From sequence record MH494197.1: DNA of 64,000 nucleotides; one strand, given 5' to 3'. Positions 11,815 through 52,617 of the stretch are shown piece by piece; positions within the stretch are counted from its first letter, which is position 1, and each line of letters begins with the position of its first letter. The notes beneath the pieces are model-generated. The model was not told the DNA's origin. It saw only the letters and a program-made list of their open reading frames with translations, and made no database searches. The position numbers and the translations under genes are program-made.

Positions 11815-11863
11815 TTCTTTTCCTTTATTTCGTTGAAACATCGTAACAGCCTTTATTATACTG

Positions 11864-12244
11864 TTACATTCGTTCAGTCAAATACTTTTGACAATCTAGT
11901 ACATCAATGTACATGAACTTATCCAATTCTGGGTGACTTCTACCATATCTGTTTGTGTAAGTACTTTTACACTCCAACTCTTCTGGTATAGGCTTATCTT
12001 TGGCTGTATAGAAAAATAAAACTAAACGTTTCCCTTTCTATACGATACATCACCAAGAAACAGAAGATCATCTTCATCGATTTCATATCCTGTCTCTTCG
12101 TAGCATTCACGTACAGCAGCCTCTTTAAATGTTTCTGTACCTTCAGTTTTACCTTTAGGTAAGTCCCAGTGATTCTGTCCGTGTTGTATGCCCGATAAGT
12201 ATCTGACCATCACGATAAAATATTATACCACAGCTATAACGCAT
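11864..12244 (-). CDS. Nudix hydrolase; frameshifted
   Basis: HWDLPKGKTEGTETFKEAAVRECYEETG Nudix box; C-terminal HPELDKF. Confidence 0.88.
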
Positions 12245-41135: not shown

Positions 41136-44095
41136 TTACAGATGAACTCCACCCGTGACGTTCTTCCCAAACTGTTTTGCTGGATTGTAAATTGATGATG
41201 TAGAAATGACTGCATGGATCTTATTAAACGTATCGTCTGCTTCTTGTTGGGTGTAATCACCATAAGTGTTTAGCACATTTTTGTATAGTTCATCGATTGC
41301 CTCATCATAAGTATCACCACCGCAATCTAACTCATAATCATGTGCTTGTACCCATTCATCATCTTGCTCAATGTACATAGGTGAGATGAATTCTACCCAA
41401 AATTGTGTCTTTGTATTCAGAGCTTTAAATGATTCAATGCGGTTTGTGATTGGACACACATCATGTGGTTCGATATCAATCCTTGGGGAACCATATCTCT
41501 GTTGATGAATTTAGGATGACCCAAAATCCACCAGTACTTTTCAGATGTAGTCATAGTAATCTCCAATTAAAAGTACTGCCACTATAACAGTACTGATATT
41601 AAATGTAACGTTTCTTTTATAATCATACCCTACTGCTTTGTAAAAGTCAAACAAAGAAGCATGTTCAAATGTAGGTAATAGATCATATGGGTGCTGATAG
41701 TTCGCAATACCAACAATAGCCATCATTGATTCAGCCGTTCTGGAATTTTCACTATCCCATTCATCTAAACGCCAAAGTGAGCAAAGTACCTCGCGTTCAT
41801 GTTGCTTACCCAGAAAGAATTCAGCTTCACGGTCACGAAATGCACCTGCACTGATAGTACTTTTGTACCAGTCTTCTTCACCATAAGCTGGCATACGGAT
41901 AATATGTTTTCTTGAGCTTCACCAAAGCGGTGAAGAAATGCCACATAATCACTCATAATTTATAACCCATTACAGGTTTGGTATGATCCGGTTCGTAAGA
42001 CTTTTCAGTACTGAACCCTCTGAAATTACCACGACGGCTTCGGACAAGCCATCCCTTCTACACCGTGCTTACCCTGAACCTTTCCGCAGTTTTTGCATTT
42101 GTATCCAATAACTTCTTTCATTGTGCATCCTTTGGAATAGTGTTAAGGCGTGTACGGTTTACAATCTTCCTGCACATGAGATTAAGATCTTGCCCATGAC
42201 GCATCTCATGGCAAGCATACAATGTGCCATCATAGTTAAGTTTAGTCAAATTCTGGCGAATGAACTCTGCATCAGCCTCCTGAACTTTAGGTGCACAGCC
42301 TGTTACTAACATCATGAGTGCTGAAACAATTGCAATAGAAATAAATTTCATAATTTAATCACCTATACATAAGTACTCGATTGATGGTTTACCATTAACT
42401 AACACAATACCAGTGTGAGTTAATACACAGTTCGTTGGTGCTTCTTCAAATACTGATACGTAAATGTATGAACCATTACTAACTGAACAAGATAATACCA
42501 TAAGAACGGCGATTAGTACAAGTAAAATTTTCATATGAACCTACTTTTTGATTTATGTAATGCAATTTGTACTCGCGTAATGAACTCACGCTCTACTTCA
42601 TCTGAATTAACACCATCATATTGTGTTTTGAATAGTTCCATAGCTTTGATAGCCATCTGAACTGAAAGATCAGCAATACTTTCAGTACTGGTACTTTCAA
42701 ATACATTTTGAGGCTTAGTTCACCATCATCAATACATTCTTTTGGTTTGTTGATTTCTGGTACTTGGATGTATCGCAATGCTTTGTATTCTGCTTTGGTC
42801 AGATTCCCAGTCCATCTTGGTTCATTGAACAAGTCATGCATTGTAATGCCAGCTTCACCCATTAGGTGTACTAACTCTTCATTTCGGCGAATATGCTTTT
42901 CTTCATCTTTGAAATTTTTGTAAGTGTAAGCACAACGCATGATAGCCAAACGTACTTCACCACTTTTAGTAATTGTATACGTATGAATTGCATTATCGTA
43001 GTCACTTTCCCATTGTTGACCCGCATATTCGTACCAAAGGTCATTTGTCTCCCAACGGAGCATTTTACCTTCTAGTAGCTCGTCAATCATTTTAGCCATG
43101 TTACCATGATATTCACAACTGGTAATATTAAATCCACCATTGTACTTTGCAAGGTATAGAATCTTTTCTTGTGATACATTTTTCATTACATGTAATCCTT
43201 GATGTATTTTAGCAGTTTAGATTTCTCTTCGGTACTTAATGATTTCTTGTTCATCAAGTGTTTCATTTCTTGACGTTCAATTTCTTCACATATTTTAGAT
43301 TCAGCTTCAATTCGTGCATGGTATTCTTCGTCAGTTTCTTCTCTGGTCCAAATTACATTGTATCCATGAAAACCGCCGTAACCACCGTCTGGTGTAAGAC
43401 TAATGTGACCGTTATATTCAGCACGATACTTATTAAGAGTGTCAATAAAGGTATCAATGCCACACGGTTCAATTTCAATATAACCAATCACTACAGTAAC
43501 TTCAATTTTGTTCATAAAGTTCACCTATAAAATTAGGAGCATTAGCTCCTTTGTATTGATGTTTACGTTTTGTACTGTATTTCCAGCCAGTACTGTGTCT
43601 TGTTCTGATATCGTCCCAATACGATGGTAATGAACGCATCTTACGTCTTCCACGTATTTCAGGTTCCCCTCATCCTTCAGTACTGCACAAGCCATACGAC
43701 GCTCTTGTTGGGTCTTAGGACGTTTGTATCGGGAGTGGTTATGTTTGTACATATACGAACGCTTGTGTCGCCATTCAGTGTCACGAGCATTTCGTTTATG
43801 CTCCCAGTACTCATTATAGAGTATCATGTATTCACCCATAAGTAAATCAGGAGATACAAGTAATCCTTTTTCAGTACAAAGATAATAACCTACGAACTTT
43901 TCTGGATACATTTCGTAATAGAAACGGTTCTTCCAAAATGTTTCACGATTCTTTTGTTGAATTCAGCTAAATCGAATTTCATCTTACTGTGGAAACGGTC
44001 TATACCATCATGTTCCGCAATGTACTCTAACAGATTATCAATAATCTCAACTTTACCTGAATCATGGTACAACGTAAATGTTTGGTCAAAAACAT
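41136..44095 (-). CDS. Array of about nine small hypothetical genes, including a lipoprotein (42118..42351, LVTG-C)
   Basis: Tightly packed minus-strand ORFs with SD sites; no assignable catalytic motifs. Confidence 0.45.
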
Positions 44096-44317
44096 ATATT
44101 TCTCCTTTAAGTTAAACTAACCTAATGGAATGTCATTCTTCCTTTACTACATGTTCTCATGGTTTAATCCTTTTGTCAATATCTAGAAAGAAAAATCCCT
44201 GCCAAAAGACAGGGATGAAAAACTGAAATAACACATGGAGTTCTTTTAAATTAATAAAAGTATTATTATTCTTATGAAAGTATTTATCATGAACTCCAGT
44301 TTATTGCTTCAAATGAA

Positions 44318-44505
44318 TCAATAACCTTTTTGTGCTACTAGCTCACGGTATTGAGCACGAGTTAGAACACCTTGTTTACGTAGAGCTTGAAGACCTGTTA
44401 GGGTTTCTGCTTTACGTAGTTCGAAAATACGTTGTTCTTTAGATTGAATAACTTTAACTTTCTTAACTTTTGCTACTGGTTCTTTTTCTTAGGTTGCTTT
44501 GCCAT
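44318..44505 (-). CDS. Small highly basic protein (about 62 aa); frameshifted
   Basis: MAKQPKKKEPVAKVKKVKVIQSKEQRIFELRKAETLTGLQALRKQGVLTRAQYRELVAQKGY; SD AGGAG and own promoter at 44536-44563. Confidence 0.55.
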
Positions 44506-44569
44506 GAGTATTTCTCCTTTGTTGTTAACAATATTATTATATCATGTATGGGACGAATGTCCCACATTA

Positions 44570-46010
44570 TTACATATTTTCTTCAGCAAATTCTGCCAGT
44601 GGTGAACGAACAACACCTTCTAGTTCGATTACACGACAACCGTCCCAGTTCTTGAACTTCTCGGTAACATAAGTTAGACCGCTGTTTACTGGACTAATGA
44701 ACTTAGAGTCAATCTGACTCAAGTTACCCATAATAACCACTTTACAGTTCATTCCTGCACGAGTCAAGATTGTTTTGCCTGAGCAGGTGTGATGTTCTGG
44801 AATTCATCAACTACTAGGATAGTATTTGTGAAAGAACGACCACGAACGAAGTTTAGTGCTTTGAACTGGATAACATTGCGTTTCATGATTTCTTCGATAC
44901 TGCCTTGTGGGTTAGCATCATCTTTGTGTAGGAATTCCAACGCATCAATTGCTGCACCACAGAAAGGAATCACTTTCTCTGCTTCAGATCCGGTAAGAAA
45001 CCAATGTCTTCGAATTGGGAATCTTGTGTTTTGGAGAAGATGATACGGTCGTATTTTTCTTCTCTAGTACTAGCTCAGTGCAGTTGCAATAGTGATTAGT
45101 GTTTTACCAGTACCTGCTGAACCTAACAGTACTGTTAGATGAACATCAGGATCTAAAATACTGTTGATTGCTAGTGCTTGCTGAATATTCTTAGCCTTGA
45201 TATCCCACACTTTAGCACGTAAAGCAACTGATTGTCCAACGTCTTGGAATACAAGAATATCTTCTGGTGTTAAAGTACCATCATCTTCTTCAATTGCAGA
45301 TTGACCTTCGTACACAAATAGAACATCAGCATTATCATATAGGTAATCACCGATGCAAATATTTTGTGGCATGATATGTTCAATCAAGCTTTTGGAATGT
45401 AGTGGTACAAACGACGACCAACTTGTTCAGACTGAATAGATACATCAGTCAGATTACTATACACATCCCAGAAATGTAGATCAAGGTGATGTTGACCAAT
45501 GTGAATCAAATCACTATCACCAATCACGATATCATGACGGTAATCTTGAACTTCCACCCCGTAGCTTAGAGCCTTGATACGCATATTGATATCACGGGTA
45601 ACCAGTACTGAATCAGTTGCTAATGCTACTAAAATGATTTTATCATCTGGTACTGTGCTTTTTAGAAGAGTTTGAACTTTCTCTTCGTTACCAGCAGTAC
45701 GAATTAGTGCTTCCGCTTCTTCGCTTGTAATAACAAACAATTTGCTTTCAGGACTCATATTAGTATGAACATCAGCAATATTAACACCAGTACTACTAAT
45801 TTCTTCATGTGATGCATCAGAAAGGATAGCTTCAATGTTACGGATTGCAACACGAGCATCACGGGAAACATCCACATTACGACTTTTGATTGAATCCAAT
45901 TCTTCAAGTACTGTGAACGGTAGAATGATAGCTGCTCCATCAAAAGCAATGGTAGCATTTGGATCAGATAGTAGTACGTTTGTGTCAATTGTATATTTTT
46001 CATAAAACAT
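44570..46010 (-). CDS. phoH: PIN-PhoH fusion (YlaK/PhoH2 type); multiply frameshifted
   Basis: YTIDTNVLLSDP (PIN), VTRDINMRIKA, LLGSAGTGKTL, RGRSFTNTILVVDEFQN, LTRAGMNCKVVIMGNLSQID, VRSPLAEFAE. Confidence 0.92.
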
Positions 46011-46082
46011 CCTTGAGTTATGAGTACATCCTTGTACTCGACTAATGGTTAGTGACTCGAATATTACATGCTCGGTTCGTAT

Positions 46083-46364
46083 TCAACATAACATCTTGAA
46101 CCACGAGCCTTTTCCTCCCAGCATTCCGTAAACTAGTTGACCAATTGATACTGGATCTCTTGATAACCCATTACGAACTTCACCAGTACTGGTTTTATAA
46201 GTAAATGAGCATTTATTTTCATTACATTGACCTAATCCTGTTACAGTCGCTGTATTGTAATGAATATTGTAACGTTTAGTGTTCTCATGATATGAACTGA
46301 ACCATAGAACACCTATACCTAACAGTGTTGTGCAAATAAGACTCTTGATATGTGTTGAAATCAT
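46083..46364 (-). CDS. Small membrane-anchored protein
   Basis: N-terminal TM segment, then a beta-rich domain. Confidence 0.5.
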   Translation of the reverse strand: MISTHIKSLICTTLLGIGVLWFSSYHENTKRYNIHYNTATVTGLGQCNENKCSFTYKTSTGEVRNGLSRDPVSIGQLVYGMLGGKGSWFKMLC

Positions 46365-46678
46365 AGTGCATTAAATCCATTAGTTAAGTAAGTTTCAATA
46401 TTAACTTTCCTACTGGATTACTACTATGTACATAGTATTTAAATGGTTCTTTAATATTATGCTCAAACATATAATCAATTAGAAATTTGGCAAAAGTGTA
46501 TCCAGTTTTCTCATCTGTACTCAAGTCACCCAAGTCATGGTCAAATGAGACAAATGCTGGAATTCCATTTTGATTACGTATTCACATGCACTTTCGTAGT
46601 CACGACACAATACCATCTCTTGGTCAGGATAATATTTTGATAATCACGAATATCATCCAAGAACATTGAGTACGACAT
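46361..46678 (-). CDS. Cyclic-phosphate-processing receiver-domain protein (cREC); frameshifted
   Basis: MFLDDIRD, VSFDHDLG, TGYTFAKFL, VHSSNP.G. Confidence 0.75.
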
Positions 46679-46687
46679 TTTAAACTC

Positions 46688-47238
46688 CTATAGATAGCTG
46701 ATTAGTAAGTTTTCTTTTTGTACAAGATACTCTAATTCTTGTTTCGCAGTTCCGATGAAGTTCTGTGTCATAAGATTATTATATCCTGCTTCTCGATTTT
46801 GTCCCTTCGAATAACGAGAGATGTGACATAAATTTACACCAGCCACCTCTGCACTAGCATGTTTGCCATATGCATAATTATCACGAAGTTTTTAAGTTCA
46901 GCATAAGTCATTTCATAACTATAGCTATGTGAGTGACCCTCTGGAAACAATTCAAGTGATTTTAATGGAGACAGGCGACTTTTGTCAATGATATAGTTCA
47001 TTTCTTCTTGAACTTCACGCTGTAACGCATCTTCTAATGACTTATCAGTACTTTCAACTGTTCCACCACATGCACCCAACAATCCATCCCAACGCACTTG
47101 TAGGAGTACTAAGTTAACCACTGGGATATCATTTAGTTCATAACCAGCGTATGGGGTACATTCTTTTGCATAAAAGAAACAGAATACAAAATTTGCACGT
47201 TTCCCCATTTGCCCCAGTGGTACTTCCGCTTTACTCAT
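46688..47238 (-). CDS. NUDT16-like Nudix hydrolase; frameshift near 46900
   Basis: LLQVRWDGLLGACGGTVESTDKSLEDALQREVQEEM...HASAEVAGV...NFIGTAKQEL. Confidence 0.75.
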
Positions 47239-47307
47239 CGCATTCGTTCCTTAATTATAGTTTCAACCTGTGGAATTGCTTTCGTCGCAGGTTTGATGAC
47301 CTTCTCA

Positions 47308-47983
47308 TTAAAAGAAAATCATTATCATTTTTCGGATGTTAACATTTACACTATAGCATGGAAGTGCACCAGCTAGTCTGGACCATACCAGTACTGTATC
47401 ACTACTTCCAATAACTACAACTGTATCATTTTCTGTGAGACTTTTCAACACTTCATTTCGTTCTTCATAAATGGGGAGACGTACCCCATCAACGTAGCGA
47501 TGATACTCACCAATCATCACTACATTTGGTTTTGCAAAAACATCAGCTTTAGGAATATATGGTTCATAACCACAATTAATGACATTGTAATCATCAGTAT
47601 TAATAGAAAAGTTCTCAATTACTTCACATAAATTGCCGTGTAGTTTGAGTTCGGTTCCACCAATTCTAGTATATAGATCATCCATATTAGAAGTCATGTG
47701 TAAAAACAATCACCATACAAATCTTCTAATGATTTAATAAAGTAATGCATTTCATTAGGATGACATTCACCTAATTTTACACGCAATGTATTATAAAATG
47801 AATGAACTACATGATACTTAGAACTAAGTCGTGCAATGTTACAAACATCATTAATTTTGAAATTGTCCCACAACCCATCATCAAAGCGGAATGGTTCCAT
47901 CCCGCTCTCAACTGAAAGACCTGCCCTGAAATTATAAGTAATCTTTTGTTCCCAGCATTTTGTATAAATTTATCTGATATCAC
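47308..47983 (-). CDS. Sir2/sirtuin-family NAD-dependent enzyme; frameshifted
   Basis: LIISGAGLSVESG, FR.DDGLW, FYN, PNEMH, TSNMDDLY, LHGNL, KPNVVMIGE, VVIGSS. Confidence 0.85.
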
Positions 47984-48214
47984 ATTTACTCCTTATATAA
48001 AAAGTATCAAGTTTAATACTAAAAATACAATGATAGCAATATGATAGACATACATCCACTTATTGTGTCCATGTTTATTACCATTCCTGAATTCTCGGTA
48101 TAAACATTTAGTGTGATTGTATAACACCACACAAATAAACACAACTATGAAACAAAAATCCACTCGTAAATTATGTATGCCATCAGATACACTCTCTCTT
48201 TATAATTATTATTC

Positions 48215-48804
48215 TCAGTATTTCAAAATATCAAACTCTGGACTAACACTTGTTACATTATCACTAACAATTTTGAAAATAGACTCAACACGTTCATGTA
48301 ACTGAACATTGGTTTCTTCTTGAACTTCAATATACGCTGACATGGATGCAATTGCATGATAAGTCCCACTTCCGACAGCAGTAATTTGTGTTTTAGGTTG
48401 CAGTACTGAAAAGTCTTCTTGAACTTCATAAATCGTATGATTATGAAGAATAATGAACTGACCACCACCAACATCTTGTGATGCATCACGAGCACCCATT
48501 CATCTTTAAACATTTGACGAATGATAGGAATAACTTTCAGTACTAGATACTGTGAAAAGGTTTCCTGCAACTTGTTCTGGTAGAGTTAGGTTGTAATTCA
48601 ACAACTGTCCCATGCGGAACGAGGTAGTATACCCAACGCCATTACTTCTTTAGTGCGAGAAAGACCATCCTCATTGAGTTTAATGAACTCTTTCTCAAAC
48701 ACTTTAGGCTCAGTTTGAACTGCTTTAGTGAAACCATTGCTTCCTAATTTATCACCAGCGATGAAGGAAGATGTGCCATTTGTGTGAGCGATAATACAAG
48801 TCAT
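48215..48804 (-). CDS. Ntn-hydrolase / HslV-proteasome-beta-like peptidase; frameshifted
   Basis: N-terminal (M)TCIIA...AGD, KVF, GYTTSFRMGQLL, AVGSG. Confidence 0.7.
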
Positions 48805-49150
48805 GAAATAACTCCTTGTGCAAAAGTGCCGTATACAACCAGTATATCAGCAACCCTAGTGTAAGTAAACATGCTCCATAAGAAATTGATAGAACATAGT
48901 AAATTCCTGCTTCGAACTTGGATGCAAATTTGTGTGTACTGGAATCCATAAAACCACGTTTGTAGTCTTTATAGATGAAACATGTTAAAACTAATGTAAT
49001 GCAATATACTATAGTTGTTGCATAAAAACAAGAGATGTTAAGTTTTGTAAATTTGTCATAGTTTATACACTCTAGTGTATGTGAACTTATAACAAAGGAT
49101 GTACCACTTTATCATCCTCTTATTATAATATTATTATTTTGTATCTAATA

Positions 49151-49745
49151 CTAATGAATGATACTACCTAATTCGAGCAACTGATCTGGTGTAAGTCTCA
49201 CAACTTCATTACCACGAACCTTACTAACCTCCACTAACAATTCTGGAGGAATACCATTCGCTGCATATAACGCAAATAGAACACCAACCTTAGTTGATAG
49301 CTGTTCAGCAAAAATAGTCATTTGGCGAACTGATATGTATGTGTCATCACTATTTCGTGCTTTACTTTCGATTGACACATTATGTAGACCTAGAATTGAG
49401 TCCTTCATCATGTATCTGTTTTCTATATTAGCACTAAAGAATGCGATAGTGCAAGAAGAATTACAATATCTTTCAACAATAATTGTTAAATTGTTATCAT
49501 TGACAAAATTTCCTAGTGCCACTCCGCATCAAAATCACCACCGTGACGTAATGATGATAGTGTCAAATGGGTGTGTTTCTCTAAAACCATCAAACGGTTT
49601 ACAGTATTTTCAGTTAAAGTTGAAATGAACTGAACTGTCTGTTTAGATTCATCATATCTAATGATACTTTTCTTTCAACACCTGCACTTGCAGGAAAGTT
49701 AATTAAGAAAATAATAATAATAGATTGGATGATTTCTTTACATAA
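49151..49745 (-). CDS. Exported ClpP/crotonase-fold protein (COG3904-like); frameshifted
   Basis: ITSRGGDF...ALGNFV..NNLTIIVERYCNSSCTIAFFS...R.....ILGLHN. Confidence 0.55.
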
Positions 49746-50005
49746 TCGTACCACTGGTTAACCCTCTTAGTTGATTGTTGATTACATAAATAATATTATA
49801 GGAAGATTTAACTTAAGTCAAATTGTTTTTATATCACTTCACAAATTCCCTCACAGAATCACCCGCCTTTTTACCTTCTTTTGAATGATTATATCACACT
49901 AATGTATAATGTCTATGCTTTTGTCAACAAATAACGTGGTAGTACTGAACTCGTTGTTGGTTCTAAGAGTTTTCCTGAAATTCAAACAAGTTGTGTACTA
50001 ACAAA

Positions 50006-50030
50006 GAAAAAGGAGCCTTATGGCTCTTTT
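50006..50030 (-). terminator. Intrinsic terminator
   Basis: AAAGAGCC-ATAA-GGCTCCTTTTT. Confidence 0.65.
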
Positions 50031-50317
50031 TATTCTACGTATTAAGTTTCTGACAAATCATGTCAGCTTCAACACGGTCTTTATAATAAATGGTAAAACC
50101 AAATTTACCAGTTACTTTATACTCTTTACAAGTTAAACAATTTACAATGTAGTACTTGTTGTTTTGTGCTGAAAATCGTACTTCATGATTACGCATCACT
50201 GGTGGAGTAGTATTATCATTTAATACCATCATCACTAAGAGTACAAGAATCACAACTGCAAATGGAATACCTAAAATCAAGAAAGTCAAAGTCACAACCC
50301 CTTATCATAAATGCAAT

Positions 50318-50767
50318 TTACAATAATCCCAGCATCTTCCAGTACTTTAATAGCTTCTGGTGGAGTGCGAGGATAACTTTGTGATAAATCACGCGAGCAA
50401 TACCACTTCCCGCGATCAACTTAGAACAAGTATAGCATGGTTGCAGCGTTGTGTAAAGTGTTGCTCCCTGACGTTCGGTAGGTGAACTGTATAACAATGC
50501 ATTCATTTCAGCATGGATTTCATGGATATTACTCCATTCATGGTGTTCATGCTTTGCGTCATCGCTAACCCAGTCTTGGAAACGTCCACCATTAACTAAG
50601 TGCTCATTAGCGTCACAGCAGTTAGGTTGTTTAGATGGAGTGCCATTATAACCAGTACTCAATACTCGGTTATTTTTAACAATAACACAACCAACTTTCT
50701 GTGAAATGCATTTACTCTCTTCAGCCACGACTTCGGCTATCTTCAACCACGTCAAGTGTTTCATCAT
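50318..50767 (-). CDS. cd: dCMP deaminase
   Basis: SKCISQKVGCVIVKNNRVLSTGYNG, IHAEMNA, TTLQPCYTCSKLI. Confidence 0.92.
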   Translation of the reverse strand: MMKHLTWLKIAEVVAEESKCISQKVGCVIVKNNRVLSTGYNGTPSKQPNCCDANEHLVNGGRFQDWVSDDAKHEHHEWSNIHEIHAEMNALLYSSPTERQGATLYTTLQPCYTCSKLIAGSGIARVIYHKVILALHQKLLKYWKMLGLL

Positions 50768-51881
50768 ATACTCCTAGGGATTGTAATTTGGTTTTACAGT
50801 TCGAATGTATTTTAAGAACACGAAGGTAGTTTAGCACATCTGATTCTTCAATGTCAAATGGTTTCGCTGCATAAACGTCCCATGCTCCCATTAATTCTGT
50901 ACAGAACTTGATATCACCCGAACCCAGCAACTTGTCACGGAATTGTTTAAACTCGATTTCTTCATCGGATAATGAAAACCCAAATCCATAAAGCACATAC
51001 CACCAGCACTGAAGCATGACCCAGATGATGTACCAATTAAAATATCATCCATCCCATATAAGCCGTAAAAATATTGGAGTACCAAGTACTAAGTTTACTT
51101 CGGTGATGATATTTAAGAACATTCTTCTTGATATTTACATCTAATGAATTAGCTGTTGATATCACTTTTTGGTTAAAATAATAGTTTTGTTCAAATTACT
51201 CAACCATACTTTAGTATCAGTTGGGCTAAGAGCAGTGTATTTCATATTAATCCTCTAAATTCCATTCATCAACCATAGTTGAGCATAATTCCATGTGTCG
51301 GAAATATTTCTCATTAAGTGAATATGGACTCTTATAAAATTGTCTTACATCAGTGAATATATCATAGTTTCTATATATAAATGACATATTTTTATTCATG
51401 AATTCTATAATCTTCCATAACTTTTCTGTATCGTTTTGTATAGTTTCTGCACTCAATCCCGTCAATTTCATTAGACGCTTGATTTTAAAGCCAGACTCTA
51501 TTGACGTATTGTTATGCTTGGTTAAGTAACTATAGCCAATGGAACTATATATTAGTTCAATACTATCAGTACTGGTTATTGTTCCTAGAAATGATTTTAA
51601 ATTTCTATTCAACCAATACCATTTTTGTTCTTGTTATAGCAAGAATACCACTTTTAACTATAGCTATTGCCTCTGAATTTAAACTTTCGGCAAATTCATC
51701 AATTAAAACATGTGATTGTAAAATAAATCACTTTGATCTTCAGATAATTTATATTGCTGCATATCCACCTACCCTATTAACAATTACACCTTGGGTATTT
51801 ACCTTGTATGGATCAATTTTTGATCAATAATTTTTGATATACAGCAAATAAAATGGGAATCATTAAAGATTCCCTAAGTAA

Positions 51882-52617
51882 TTATTTCTGGAATGGAGTG
51901 TACTGGTACTGCTCACAATCAGATACAGTTAGTACACCTTCATCATAACCGTACTGGAGAATAAGATCAAATGCTTTATCAACCATAGCTACAACGTCTT
52001 TGTAACGAACGATGGTGTGTGCCTGTTTCTCAACTGCTTTCATAATACCCATCAGCATCCAGCGGCCTTCATCAGTGTGAAGTTTAGCAAAACGAGGACG
52101 TTTAGTTGCTGCCATAATGTCAGTCCATTCTGCTTTAAACACTGATGGACGTTTAGGAATATCATACAGAGTTGTTGGGAATGTTACGTTGTTTTTCTTC
52201 ATAGCTTCAGCTTGTGCAGCACGATAACCTTGACGGAATAGTGGGTGCTGTGATTTTAGCTGTTCATTGTTAAAAACTACTTTGTTTTAAACGCGTCATA
52301 ACCTTCTTTGTATTGTGCATTAGACATATTATTCTTTCCCTCGTCAGTACTGATGAATTTTTTATCTGAGAATGTGCCGTGTTCTTGACGCATAGCTTCT
52401 GCGTGTTGAACTGCGTTAATTGGATTAATGTTCTTTTAATAAGAACTTCTTGCATTAATTCGAGAACAATAGAAAAACCATTGAGTACTCGTTCTGCCTC
52501 GTCAACACCTTTCAATTCAATAGCCACTGCACTAATCTGATCTAATGCGGTATTAATAAACTCTGAATCATCTAACACATCATTGACTTCAGTATTATTA
52601 CGTACAAGAACTTTCAT
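51882..52617 (-). CDS. Hypothetical protein; frameshifted
   Basis: ORFs 52270..52656 and 51882..52202 join; terminator at 51849-51875. Confidence 0.5.

Follow-up and report, generated by a model that had tools for sequence, protein, structure and literature searches.

A full-length NUDT16-family Nudix hydrolase within a conserved Sir2-Nudix-cREC gene block of Rak2-like jumbo phages

Escherichia phage CMSTMSU (MH494197.1) is an Asteriusvirus jumbo phage of 386 kb. Within a 64,000-nucleotide (nt) stretch of this record (the window, which matches the record with 100% identity and shares its coordinates), a gene at 46688..47238 on the minus strand encodes a specific, full-length member of the NUDT16 family of Nudix hydrolases. 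The gene comprises 183 codons in intact orthologues and carries one frameshift here, almost certainly a sequencing artefact. It is part of a conserved block that also encodes a CobB-like Sir2 protein, a cREC (cyclic-phosphate processing receiver-like domain) protein, a small predicted membrane protein, and a PIN-PhoH protein. The reading that we favor, with about even confidence, is that the Nudix protein is an active pyrophosphohydrolase that works together with cREC on nucleotides derived from nicotinamide adenine dinucleotide (NAD) or ADP-ribose.

In the deposited sequence, the ATG at 47236-47238 (minus strand), which has an AAGGAA ribosome-binding site upstream, opens a first frame containing the Nudix-box stretch. 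A second frame, containing the peptides HASAEVAGV and NFIGTAKQEL, ends at the stop codon at 46688-46690 (minus strand). Thus, 46688-47238 is exactly one gene in two frames. The two frames were not joined; the pieces were searched apart, and full-length tests used the natural intact orthologues of phages vB_Ec-M-J and PBECO4 (gp094). The N-terminal piece matches the Pfam family PF22327 (Nudt16-like) with an E-value (E) of 2.2e-12 and 47.7 bits, where the cut-off is 27; its matches to chains of human NUDT16 have E = 1.4e-08. The C-terminal piece covers the final 33 positions (129-161) of PF22327, a match that is sub-threshold alone (E = 0.12, 12.8 bits), and it matches PHROG 9999 with E = 2.2e-21; both pieces match this PHROG, at its two ends. 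The intact vB_Ec-M-J orthologue of 183 amino acids (aa) covers positions 4-161 of the 161 in PF22327 (E = 1.5e-18, 67.7 bits, cut-off 27), and its residues 28-179 align with residues 29-181 of human NUDT16 (HMMER, E = 8.8e-12).

This similarity is specific to one branch of the Nudix superfamily. All 15 of the sequence matches in the Protein Data Bank (PDB) with E < 1e-7 are to NUDT16, Xenopus X29, or TIRR/Syndesmos (E = 9e-12 to 4e-8), whereas the best generic Nudix protein in this search has E = 0.019. A profile built from 11 phage proteins again finds NUDT16, X29, and TIRR in the PDB. An AlphaFold monomer model of the orthologue has a mean pLDDT (predicted local distance difference test) of 90 and a pTM (predicted template modeling score) of 0.87. 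When this model is compared with the PDB by Foldseek, ranks 1-39 are all members of the NUDT16 family (E ~1e-14 to 2e-11, template modeling [TM] score ~0.7-0.8, 166-188 aligned columns), and only at rank 40 does another Nudix protein appear, a CoA pyrophosphatase (E = 3e-7, TM 0.55). Among phage protein families, the match to PHROG 9999 (E = 1e-45) far exceeds that to the general MutT/NUDIX family, PHROG 1198 (E = 5e-4). The protein scores 15.5 bits against the ADP-ribose pyrophosphatase-type Nudix model TIGR00052 of NCBIfam (YffH/AdpP), which has a cut-off of 79.55. An initial annotation, made from the letters of the window, had proposed a phage Nudix enzyme resembling NUDT16 over its full length. 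The peptides that it quoted are all found in the window, on the minus strand, and the proposal is borne out by the searches above: the similarity is specific to NUDT16, and the best matches are not to generic bacterial Nudix families.

The same annotation spoke of a "frameshift-hidden tail". The tail does lie in a second frame and is NUDT16-like, but the frameshift does not represent biology. Relative to the 552-nt gene of vB_Ec-M-J, the CMSTMSU gene has one mismatch and has lost a single base from a homopolymer run. Across the surrounding 10 kb (42021-51970), comparison with vB_Ec-M-J, which is 98.3% identical, yields 110 mismatches and 53 deletion runs but no insertions, and 41 of the 53 deletion runs lie in homopolymers of at least 3 bases. 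All five genes of the block are broken in CMSTMSU, by deletions every time: PIN-PhoH six times, cREC three times, the Nudix and membrane protein genes once each, and Sir2 three times if the vB_Ec-M-J bounds are used or four times with a PBECO4-like start. As the record carries these breaks, PhoH is fragmented in the deposited annotation into four "putative ATPase" coding sequences, and the Nudix gene appears as a truncated hypothetical protein. The GenBank record is also flagged UNVERIFIED_ORG. Intact versions of the gene are readily found. The corresponding region is 98-99% identical at the nucleotide level in phages vB_Ec-M-J, Turkey3, Ecwhy_1, fEgEco12, EC.P1, WPEC5, and TH47, and about 80% identical in the PBECO4/121Q group; the closest relatives (98.9-100% protein identity) have one unbroken Nudix open reading frame (ORF). 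A tblastn search of 50,697 phage records found the protein in 75, and among the matches listed it is a single unbroken piece except in CMSTMSU (two pieces) and Salmonella phage 40 (three pieces).

Taken at face value, the deposited sequence splits the gene into two frames, as would be seen if the gene were a decaying pseudogene in CMSTMSU or were expressed by programmed ribosomal frameshifting. Either is very improbable, since one-sided homopolymer deletions break many genes of a plaque-forming phage, a burden that such a phage could hardly bear, and the gene is unbroken in the closest relatives and in nearly all other carriers listed. That the gene belongs to the NUDT16 family and that its break is a sequencing artefact can together be regarded as nearly certain. 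The CMSTMSU record is unreliable at homopolymers, and frameshifts in the window should therefore not be taken as biology until shown to be so. The same excess of deletions probably extends over the whole record.

The functional residues of the family are well defined in human NUDT16. Arg50 and Asp52 bind phosphate, and Glu76, Glu79/80, and Glu136 serve in metal binding and catalysis; His24 stacks on the base, which is also contacted by Ile164, Ser166, and Gln170 of the last helix (PMC4485890, PMC6459841). In addition, the backbone of Phe57, which lies inside a GFP motif, reads the 6-oxo group of the purine (PMC4485890). These positions were mapped from the HMMER alignment and column counts in 17 phage-clade proteins and 150 distant homologues. 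Residues R49, D51, E75, E78, E79, and E131 (phage numbering) are invariant in 17 of 17 phage-clade proteins, and their equivalents are kept in at least 135 of the 150 distant homologues. Since its metal-binding and catalytic residues are invariant, the phage enzyme looks catalytically competent.

On its base-binding side, the pocket departs from the solved one. The equivalent of Ile164 is I or V, and that of Ser166 is T or S, in the phage clade. The equivalent of Gln170 is a Glu that is invariant in the Asteriusvirus-type alignment; among the distant homologues this position is Glu in 113 of 150 and Gln in 8. The region of His24 is unaligned by HMMER. The likeliest column for it has Tyr/Phe in phage-clade proteins, and 11 of the 150 distant homologues have His there; the phage strand has an invariant Phe19 and a Tyr/Phe23. 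In place of the GFP motif, 17 of 17 phage-clade proteins have G-[A/G/T/H]-[C/V/S/T] (G-A-C in the window). At the same positions, the distant homologues have Phe in 125 and Pro in 77 of 150, and the motif is kept in the metazoan proteins and in a natural fusion to an inosine triphosphate pyrophosphatase (ITPase). The GFP motif is a signature of a subfamily and no requirement of PF22327. The phage-clade proteins are also acidic, with an isoelectric point (pI) of 4.8-5.6 and a net charge of -5 to -12, compared with a pI of 6.1-7.0 for 7 vertebrate NUDT16 proteins.

The gene order of the block in Asteriusvirus is Sir2, Nudix, cREC, membrane protein, and PIN-PhoH, with overlapping or very short junctions throughout. 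In the window all five genes lie on the minus strand. The first, at 47235..47983, encodes a CobB-like Sir2 protein (NAD-dependent protein deacylase) and contains single-base deletions; its stop overlaps the start codon of the Nudix gene (ATGA). This start is placed by analogy with PBECO4 gp095, and the start used for vB_Ec-M-J would be the equivalent of 47900. The annotated lengths differ accordingly, 222 aa in vB_Ec-M-J versus 250 aa in PBECO4 (L002 5243-5995 compared with L003 5242-5994); in the Pfam SIR2 model, roughly the first twelve positions matched by the longer annotation are missing from the shorter. The protein matches Pfam SIR2, and its best PDB matches are CobB deacylases, including 1s5p and 6rxj (E ~1e-22); its matches to the NCBIfam CobB models are sub-threshold. 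The cREC gene, at 46361..46678, starts 9 nt after the Nudix stop. It has 106 codons in relatives and 3 single-base deletions here, and it matches Pfam PF20274 (cREC_REC) with E = 1.9e-23 for an intact orthologue and E = 6.8e-08 for the fragment in the window; the cREC alignment, searched against solved structures, gave no relative. The next gene, at 46064..46364, has 100 codons in relatives and one 2-base deletion here. Its overlap with the cREC stop is 4 nt in relatives, and its product, which matches no Pfam family, is annotated as a membrane protein in PBECO4, RaK2, GAP32, and CBB. The last gene of the block, at 44570..46003, has 6 single-base deletions and encodes a PhoH2-type predicted RNase/ATPase; PIN_4 and PhoH domains are present in the homologous contigs, and the match in the window consists of 4 tblastn pieces. 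A scan of the block for promoters and terminators gave 24 promoter-like sites, where 17.8 +/- 4.7 would be expected, and did not yield a terminator. PADLOC matched none of the Nudix, cREC, and Sir2 proteins to a defence system.

The block is conserved across five jumbo-phage genera and is present in RaK2. In every Rak2-like phage context examined, cREC is either adjacent or fused to the Nudix protein. It adjoins the Nudix gene in Asteriusvirus, in RaK2, and in metagenomic jumbo-phage contigs L006 and L009, and it is fused to it in CBB, GAP32, and Yersinia phage fHe-Yen9-03 (~300 aa), in contig L008, and in the proteins P0013, P0166, and P0167. In Asteriusvirus, RaK2, and GAP32, the stop codon of Sir2 runs into the Nudix start codon or lies immediately before it. 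NAMPT is encoded 1-3 kb upstream in RaK2, GAP32, CBB, and Yersinia phage fHe-Yen9-03, and contigs L006 and L008 have genes for NAMPT, an NMNAT-Nudix, and an Acb1-type 2H phosphoesterase together within a few kb.

Several observations concern Nudix and cREC genes elsewhere. In the large-phage contigs L020 (4000-5544), L021 (2053-3597), and L024 (4001-5476), a standalone cREC gene immediately precedes an RNA ligase gene (PF09414), and L020 additionally has a T4 Rnl1-type ligase and a kinase-like gene. A 111-aa protein of Klebsiella phage K64-1 (P0250), whose sole Pfam domain is cREC_REC, is named "nudix hydrolase" at its source, a name that was probably carried over from the neighboring gene or from fused homologues. 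The window also contains a second, generic Nudix gene (11818-12210, minus strand), which has a canonical Nudix box and matches the general Pfam NUDIX family only, without a Nudt16-like match. A single tblastn match with 63.7% identity relates it to a 136-aa "nudix hydrolase" of vB_Ec-M-J, encoded beside a tRNA nucleotidyltransferase gene.

Distant members of the family provide a separate view of its possible partners. NUDT16-like domains are found fused to Ham1/ITPase, HD_4, NMNAT-like nucleotidyltransferase, and cREC domains. Among 20 longer homologues checked, the recognised partner domains are all small-molecule nucleotide enzymes, and no RNA-binding domain is fused. The HD_4 fusions (P0060, P0096, and P0132), which join the NUDT16-like domain to a RelA/SpoT-type HD domain, occur in both domain orders. 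A natural fusion of Ham1/ITPase with a NUDT16-like domain (P0059, 391 aa; L014 5001-6176 and L015 5001-6176) is encoded beside purA and purC homologues; this single protein unites both of the enzymes that clear inosine triphosphate (ITP) and inosine diphosphate (IDP) in mammals. Finally, a 278-aa homologue (P0018; L013 5001-5837, on an 888-kb metagenomic contig) lies inside an apparent NAD biosynthesis operon with the order NAPRTase, NMNAT-like transferase, Nudt16-like protein, and glutamine-dependent NAD synthase.

The gene context, that is, the overlap with Sir2, the presence of NAMPT and cREC, and the homologue in a NAD operon, leads us to favor chemistry of NAD and ADP-ribose. The initial annotation had suggested that the enzyme removes NAD or other caps, or ADP-ribose marks, which is plausible; the context also brings in cREC, an obligate partner absent from that suggestion. 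Likewise, small-molecule substrates are favored since the fusion partners are small-molecule nucleotide enzymes and the phage-clade proteins are acidic. In the mechanism that we propose, the enzyme would bind a purine nucleoside diphosphate linked to a group X, with the base buried against the C-terminal helix. The diphosphate would be held by the conserved Arg/Asp pair and by Mg2+ bound to the glutamates of the REUXEE motif plus the distal Glu. Metal-dependent attack on the diphosphate, which is established Nudix chemistry, would then generate a nucleoside monophosphate and phospho-X. The Nudix protein would be translationally coupled to the upstream CobB-like Sir2 and would form a two-enzyme unit with the downstream cREC phosphoesterase-like protein; some genera carry these two as a fusion. 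The likeliest substrates would be ADP-ribose itself, the O-acyl-ADP-ribose made by Sir2, and cyclic or phosphorylated derivatives of ADP-ribose that cREC has first opened. Cleaving them would yield AMP and ribose phosphates, both removing these compounds and feeding the resynthesis of nucleotides and NAD during infection. Human NUDT16 both binds and hydrolyzes ADP-ribose (PMC6459841). In addition, cRec has been predicted to linearise molecules of the cyclic ADP-ribose type or to open 2',3'-cyclic phosphates, with a Nudix protein then releasing AMP, on the basis of comparative genomics (PMC7824862).

Several points weigh against this reading. The Michaelis constant of human NUDT16 for free ADP-ribose is high, 837 uM (PMC6459841), and literature searches found no report of activity for any phage-clade member. 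With Gln170 replaced by Glu and the GFP motif lost, the base pocket of the phage protein differs from those that have been solved. Within the 64-kb window, tblastn detects no homologue of NAMPT, NMNAT-Nudix, or Acb1, and the 248-aa protein encoded upstream of the Nudix gene in contig L009 is no recognizable Sir2. The gene order could partly reflect the shared descent of the Rak2-like phages instead of function, and the Nudix-cREC fusion alone does not depend on that descent. In all the Rak2-like contexts examined, the module is followed by PIN-PhoH, and in two of three distinct contexts of other phages standalone cREC lies beside RNA ligases; both observations point toward RNA ends.

An RNA substrate is indeed the best of the alternatives, although we consider it a good deal less probable than the reading above. 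Here the enzyme, like X29 and NUDT16, would process the 5' ends of host or phage RNA, removing NAD, FAD (flavin adenine dinucleotide), dephospho-CoA, or Np4N caps, or a 5' pyrophosphate, to leave a 5' monophosphate. cREC would clear 2',3'-cyclic phosphate 3' ends and PIN-PhoH would degrade or unwind the RNA, making the block a cassette for RNA end-clearing, turnover, or repair. The founding activity of the family, RNA binding and decapping, is conserved across metazoa (PMC2566886), and NUDT16 reportedly acts on metabolite caps too (PMC7337524). Phage T4 RNA is NAD-capped, and the T4 Nudix protein NudE.1 removes NAD caps in vitro (bioRxiv 10.1101/2024.04.04.588121). The position of standalone cREC directly upstream of RNA ligase PF09414 is seen in two independent phage contexts, one of them with a T4-type Rnl1 and a kinase, and operons of cRec with RNA ligase have been noted (PMC7824862). 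However, the phage-clade proteins are more acidic than the vertebrate enzymes, and the longer homologues carry small-molecule enzymes rather than RNA-binding domains. Moreover, the tightest linkage in the block, with overlapping stop and start codons, is to Sir2 and not to PhoH, and the second, generic Nudix protein of the window could serve RNA 5' ends.

Rather less likely still is the idea that the Nudix and cREC proteins form a two-step eraser of ADP-ribose-based molecules in the conflict between host and phage. It could act on immune signals made of cyclic or phosphorylated ADP-ribose, or on ADP-ribose carried by protein, RNA, or DNA. In the first step the modification would be opened or trimmed by cREC; in the second, the NUDT16-type enzyme with its open mouth would cut the pyrophosphate. 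If so, a family that the literature has so far described only from metazoa would be a counter-defence tool of jumbo phages.

The clearance of inosine nucleotides appears improbable. By analogy with mammalian NUDT16, which acts together with ITPA, the enzyme would convert (d)IDP or (d)ITP to (d)IMP (inosine monophosphate), protecting phage replication from deaminated purines and possibly blunting defences that convert ATP/dATP to ITP/dITP, such as RADAR and Cad1. Human NUDT16 prefers IDP and dIDP, and its complex with IMP defines the pocket (PMC4485890). The production of ITP and dITP by Cad1 and RADAR is an antiviral mechanism, for which NUDT16 and ITPA are cited as cellular safeguards (PMC11645235). 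The Ham1/ITPase fusion found in metagenomes beside purA and purC also fits, as do the genes for dCMP deaminase and anaerobic ribonucleotide reductase located a few kb to ~10 kb away in relatives. However, the GFP motif, which recognizes the 6-oxo group (PMC4485890), is replaced in every phage-clade protein even though the ITPase fusion and the metazoan enzymes keep it. In addition, the neighbors of the phage gene are Sir2, cREC, and NAMPT, with no ITPase or purine-synthesis gene among them.

Finally, a role as a non-catalytic binder of the TIRR/NUDT16L1 type, sequestering either a nucleotide or a partner protein, would agree with the TIRR/Syndesmos chains among the significant sequence and fold matches and with the frequent deployment of sponge proteins by phages against nucleotide signals, but is highly unlikely, given that R74-E75, E78-E79, and E131 (phage numbering) are invariant across the phage clade and that NUDT16 and X29 score better (E ~1e-11 to 1e-14) than TIRR (~1e-8).

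The NUDT16-like family is small. An exhaustive HMMER search of 1.84 billion representatives yields 478 proteins with E <= 1e-3, of which 151 have E <= 1e-10; a word-indexed protein search with the intact orthologue yields 11 close clusters. Named HMMER matches are mostly metazoan NUDT16 or TIRR. Phage-clade proteins that bear a name are labeled as NUDIX hydrolase of E. coli, unnamed metagenomic members are sometimes automatically labeled "U8 snoRNA-decapping enzyme", and most distant homologues are without a taxonomic label. A neighbor-joining tree of 167 family members, based simply on distances and lacking support values, places the 17 phage proteins in one monophyletic group whose sister group is two environmental sequences. 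The metazoan NUDT16 and TIRR proteins form a separate clade, with the phage proteins outside it. The phage protein is thus a member of the family and no orthologue of metazoan NUDT16. The initial annotation had likened it to vertebrate NUDT16 and looked to phylogeny for the direction of transfer. The likeness holds, but the restriction to vertebrates does not, since the family includes a Patescibacteria member and many environmental ones. A recent transfer from animals was considered and rejected; as the phage clade is separate from, and not nested in, the metazoan clade, nothing points to capture from an animal.

Isolated phages that carry the gene (the 75 tblastn records) are Rak2-like jumbo phages and a few Aeromonas phages. 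The Rak2-like genera among them include Asteriusvirus, Alcyoneusvirus, Mimasvirus, and Eneladusvirus; related Erwinia, Serratia, Xanthomonas, Salmonella, and Klebsiella phages are carriers too. A scan of IMG/VR with the phage alignment gave one locus, on a 121Q-like contig. A more distant NUDT16-like Nudix protein (33% identity) is encoded by the 101-kb Aeromonas phage LAh_6 (L031 3911-4456). There, no Sir2, cREC, or PhoH is annotated nearby, and the block is therefore not universal for phage members of the family. Bacterial relatives were sought by a contig scan that used a single Patescibacteria-type member as query. This NUDT16-like protein (P0165, on at least 26 contigs) is encoded between tsf and frr (L016 5001-5597, L017 1436-2032, L018 762-1358), an interval that in bacteria is usually the position of pyrH. 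A full-length relative of P0165 with 55% identity is present in a Patescibacteria metagenome-assembled genome (L025 1857-2453). In the single dedicated phylogenetic study found, NUDT16 orthologues extend from human to Cnidaria, with yeast and plants lacking them (PMC2566886). Databases show a microbial and viral branch of the family as well, which the literature apparently does not discuss.

Human NUDT16 and Xenopus X29, which serve as U8 snoRNA-decapping enzyme, (d)IDP diphosphatase, and pyrophosphatase of ADP-ribose and protein-ADP-ribose, are the closest characterized counterparts. The phage protein shares with them PF22327, an end-to-end alignment with ~25% identity, and a fold (TM 0.8) with the extra strand at the N terminus and the helix at the C terminus, as well as the Arg/Asp phosphate pair, the REUXEE glutamates, the distal Glu, and apparently, with I/V and T/S, the Ile/Ser-type positions of the base helix. 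It differs in its separate clade, in having small residues in place of the GFP motif and a Glu that is invariant where NUDT16 has Gln170, in its greater acidity, and in its encoding within a Sir2-Nudix-cREC-PhoH block, sometimes as a fusion to cREC. A feature of the NUDT16 family is a homodimer with an open "mouth" for macromolecule-linked substrates; the model of the phage protein covers the monomer. TIRR (also NUDT16L1 or Syndesmos) is an inactive paralogue of NUDT16 that masks the Tudor domain of 53BP1. It shares family and fold with the phage protein (E ~1e-8; TM 0.7-0.8), but the phage clade retains all catalytic residues examined and scores higher to NUDT16 and X29.

Two major clades of phage Nudix proteins, T4 NudE/NudE.1 and the NadM type, have been named in a study in which NUDT16 is unmentioned (PMC9503650). 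These too are phage-encoded Nudix enzymes, with ties to NAD and ADP-ribose; T4 NudE uses ADP-ribose, FAD, and Ap3A. Unlike the T4 NudE and NadM types, the phage NUDT16-like protein belongs to PHROG 9999 and not 1198, and ADP-ribose pyrophosphatase structures match it only with TM ~0.55. The decapping Nudix proteins of large eukaryotic DNA viruses are likewise virus-encoded and act on nucleotide-linked 5' ends. A specific kinship with giant or eukaryotic virus Nudix proteins was considered and set aside, as such matches in BFVD have E = 1e-7 or weaker and TM ~0.5, like those to any Nudix protein; in the same database the CBB homologue has TM 0.96 and the Aeromonas phage homologue TM 0.72. NARP3 and RyDEP were also considered as explanations and rejected, since neither involves the NUDT16-like family. 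The module does fit the jumbo-phage Nudix-cREC scheme of Iyer, Anantharaman, Krishnan, Burroughs, and Aravind (2021, PMC7824862), the paper that defined cRec. In the passages of it considered here, the partner Nudix protein is not called NUDT16-like, the five-gene block is undescribed, and the role of cRec is a prediction.

Parts of this picture were thus already in place. Many relatives are annotated "nudix hydrolase", Pfam provides the Nudt16-like placement, the Aeromonas homologue has been automatically named "U8 snoRNA-decapping enzyme", and the link of Nudix with cREC was predicted in general terms in 2021 (PMC7824862). Literature searches found no study of this phage Nudix protein. They also found no recognition of the cREC-partner Nudix of Rak2-like phages as NUDT16 family, and no account of the conserved Sir2-Nudix-cREC-membrane-PhoH block or of the spread of the family beyond metazoa.

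Beyond metazoa, the family is now seen in enterobacterial Rak2-like jumbo phages and a Patescibacteria genome, as well as in many contigs from metagenomes. Its fusions to ITPase, HD, NMNAT-like, and cREC domains offer independent hints about the native substrates of NUDT16, which have been much debated. The biology of NAD and ADP-ribose is an area in which several counter-defence enzymes of phages have lately come to light, and the block described here, often located beside NAMPT, would be an uncharacterised part of the jumbo-phage toolkit for these molecules.

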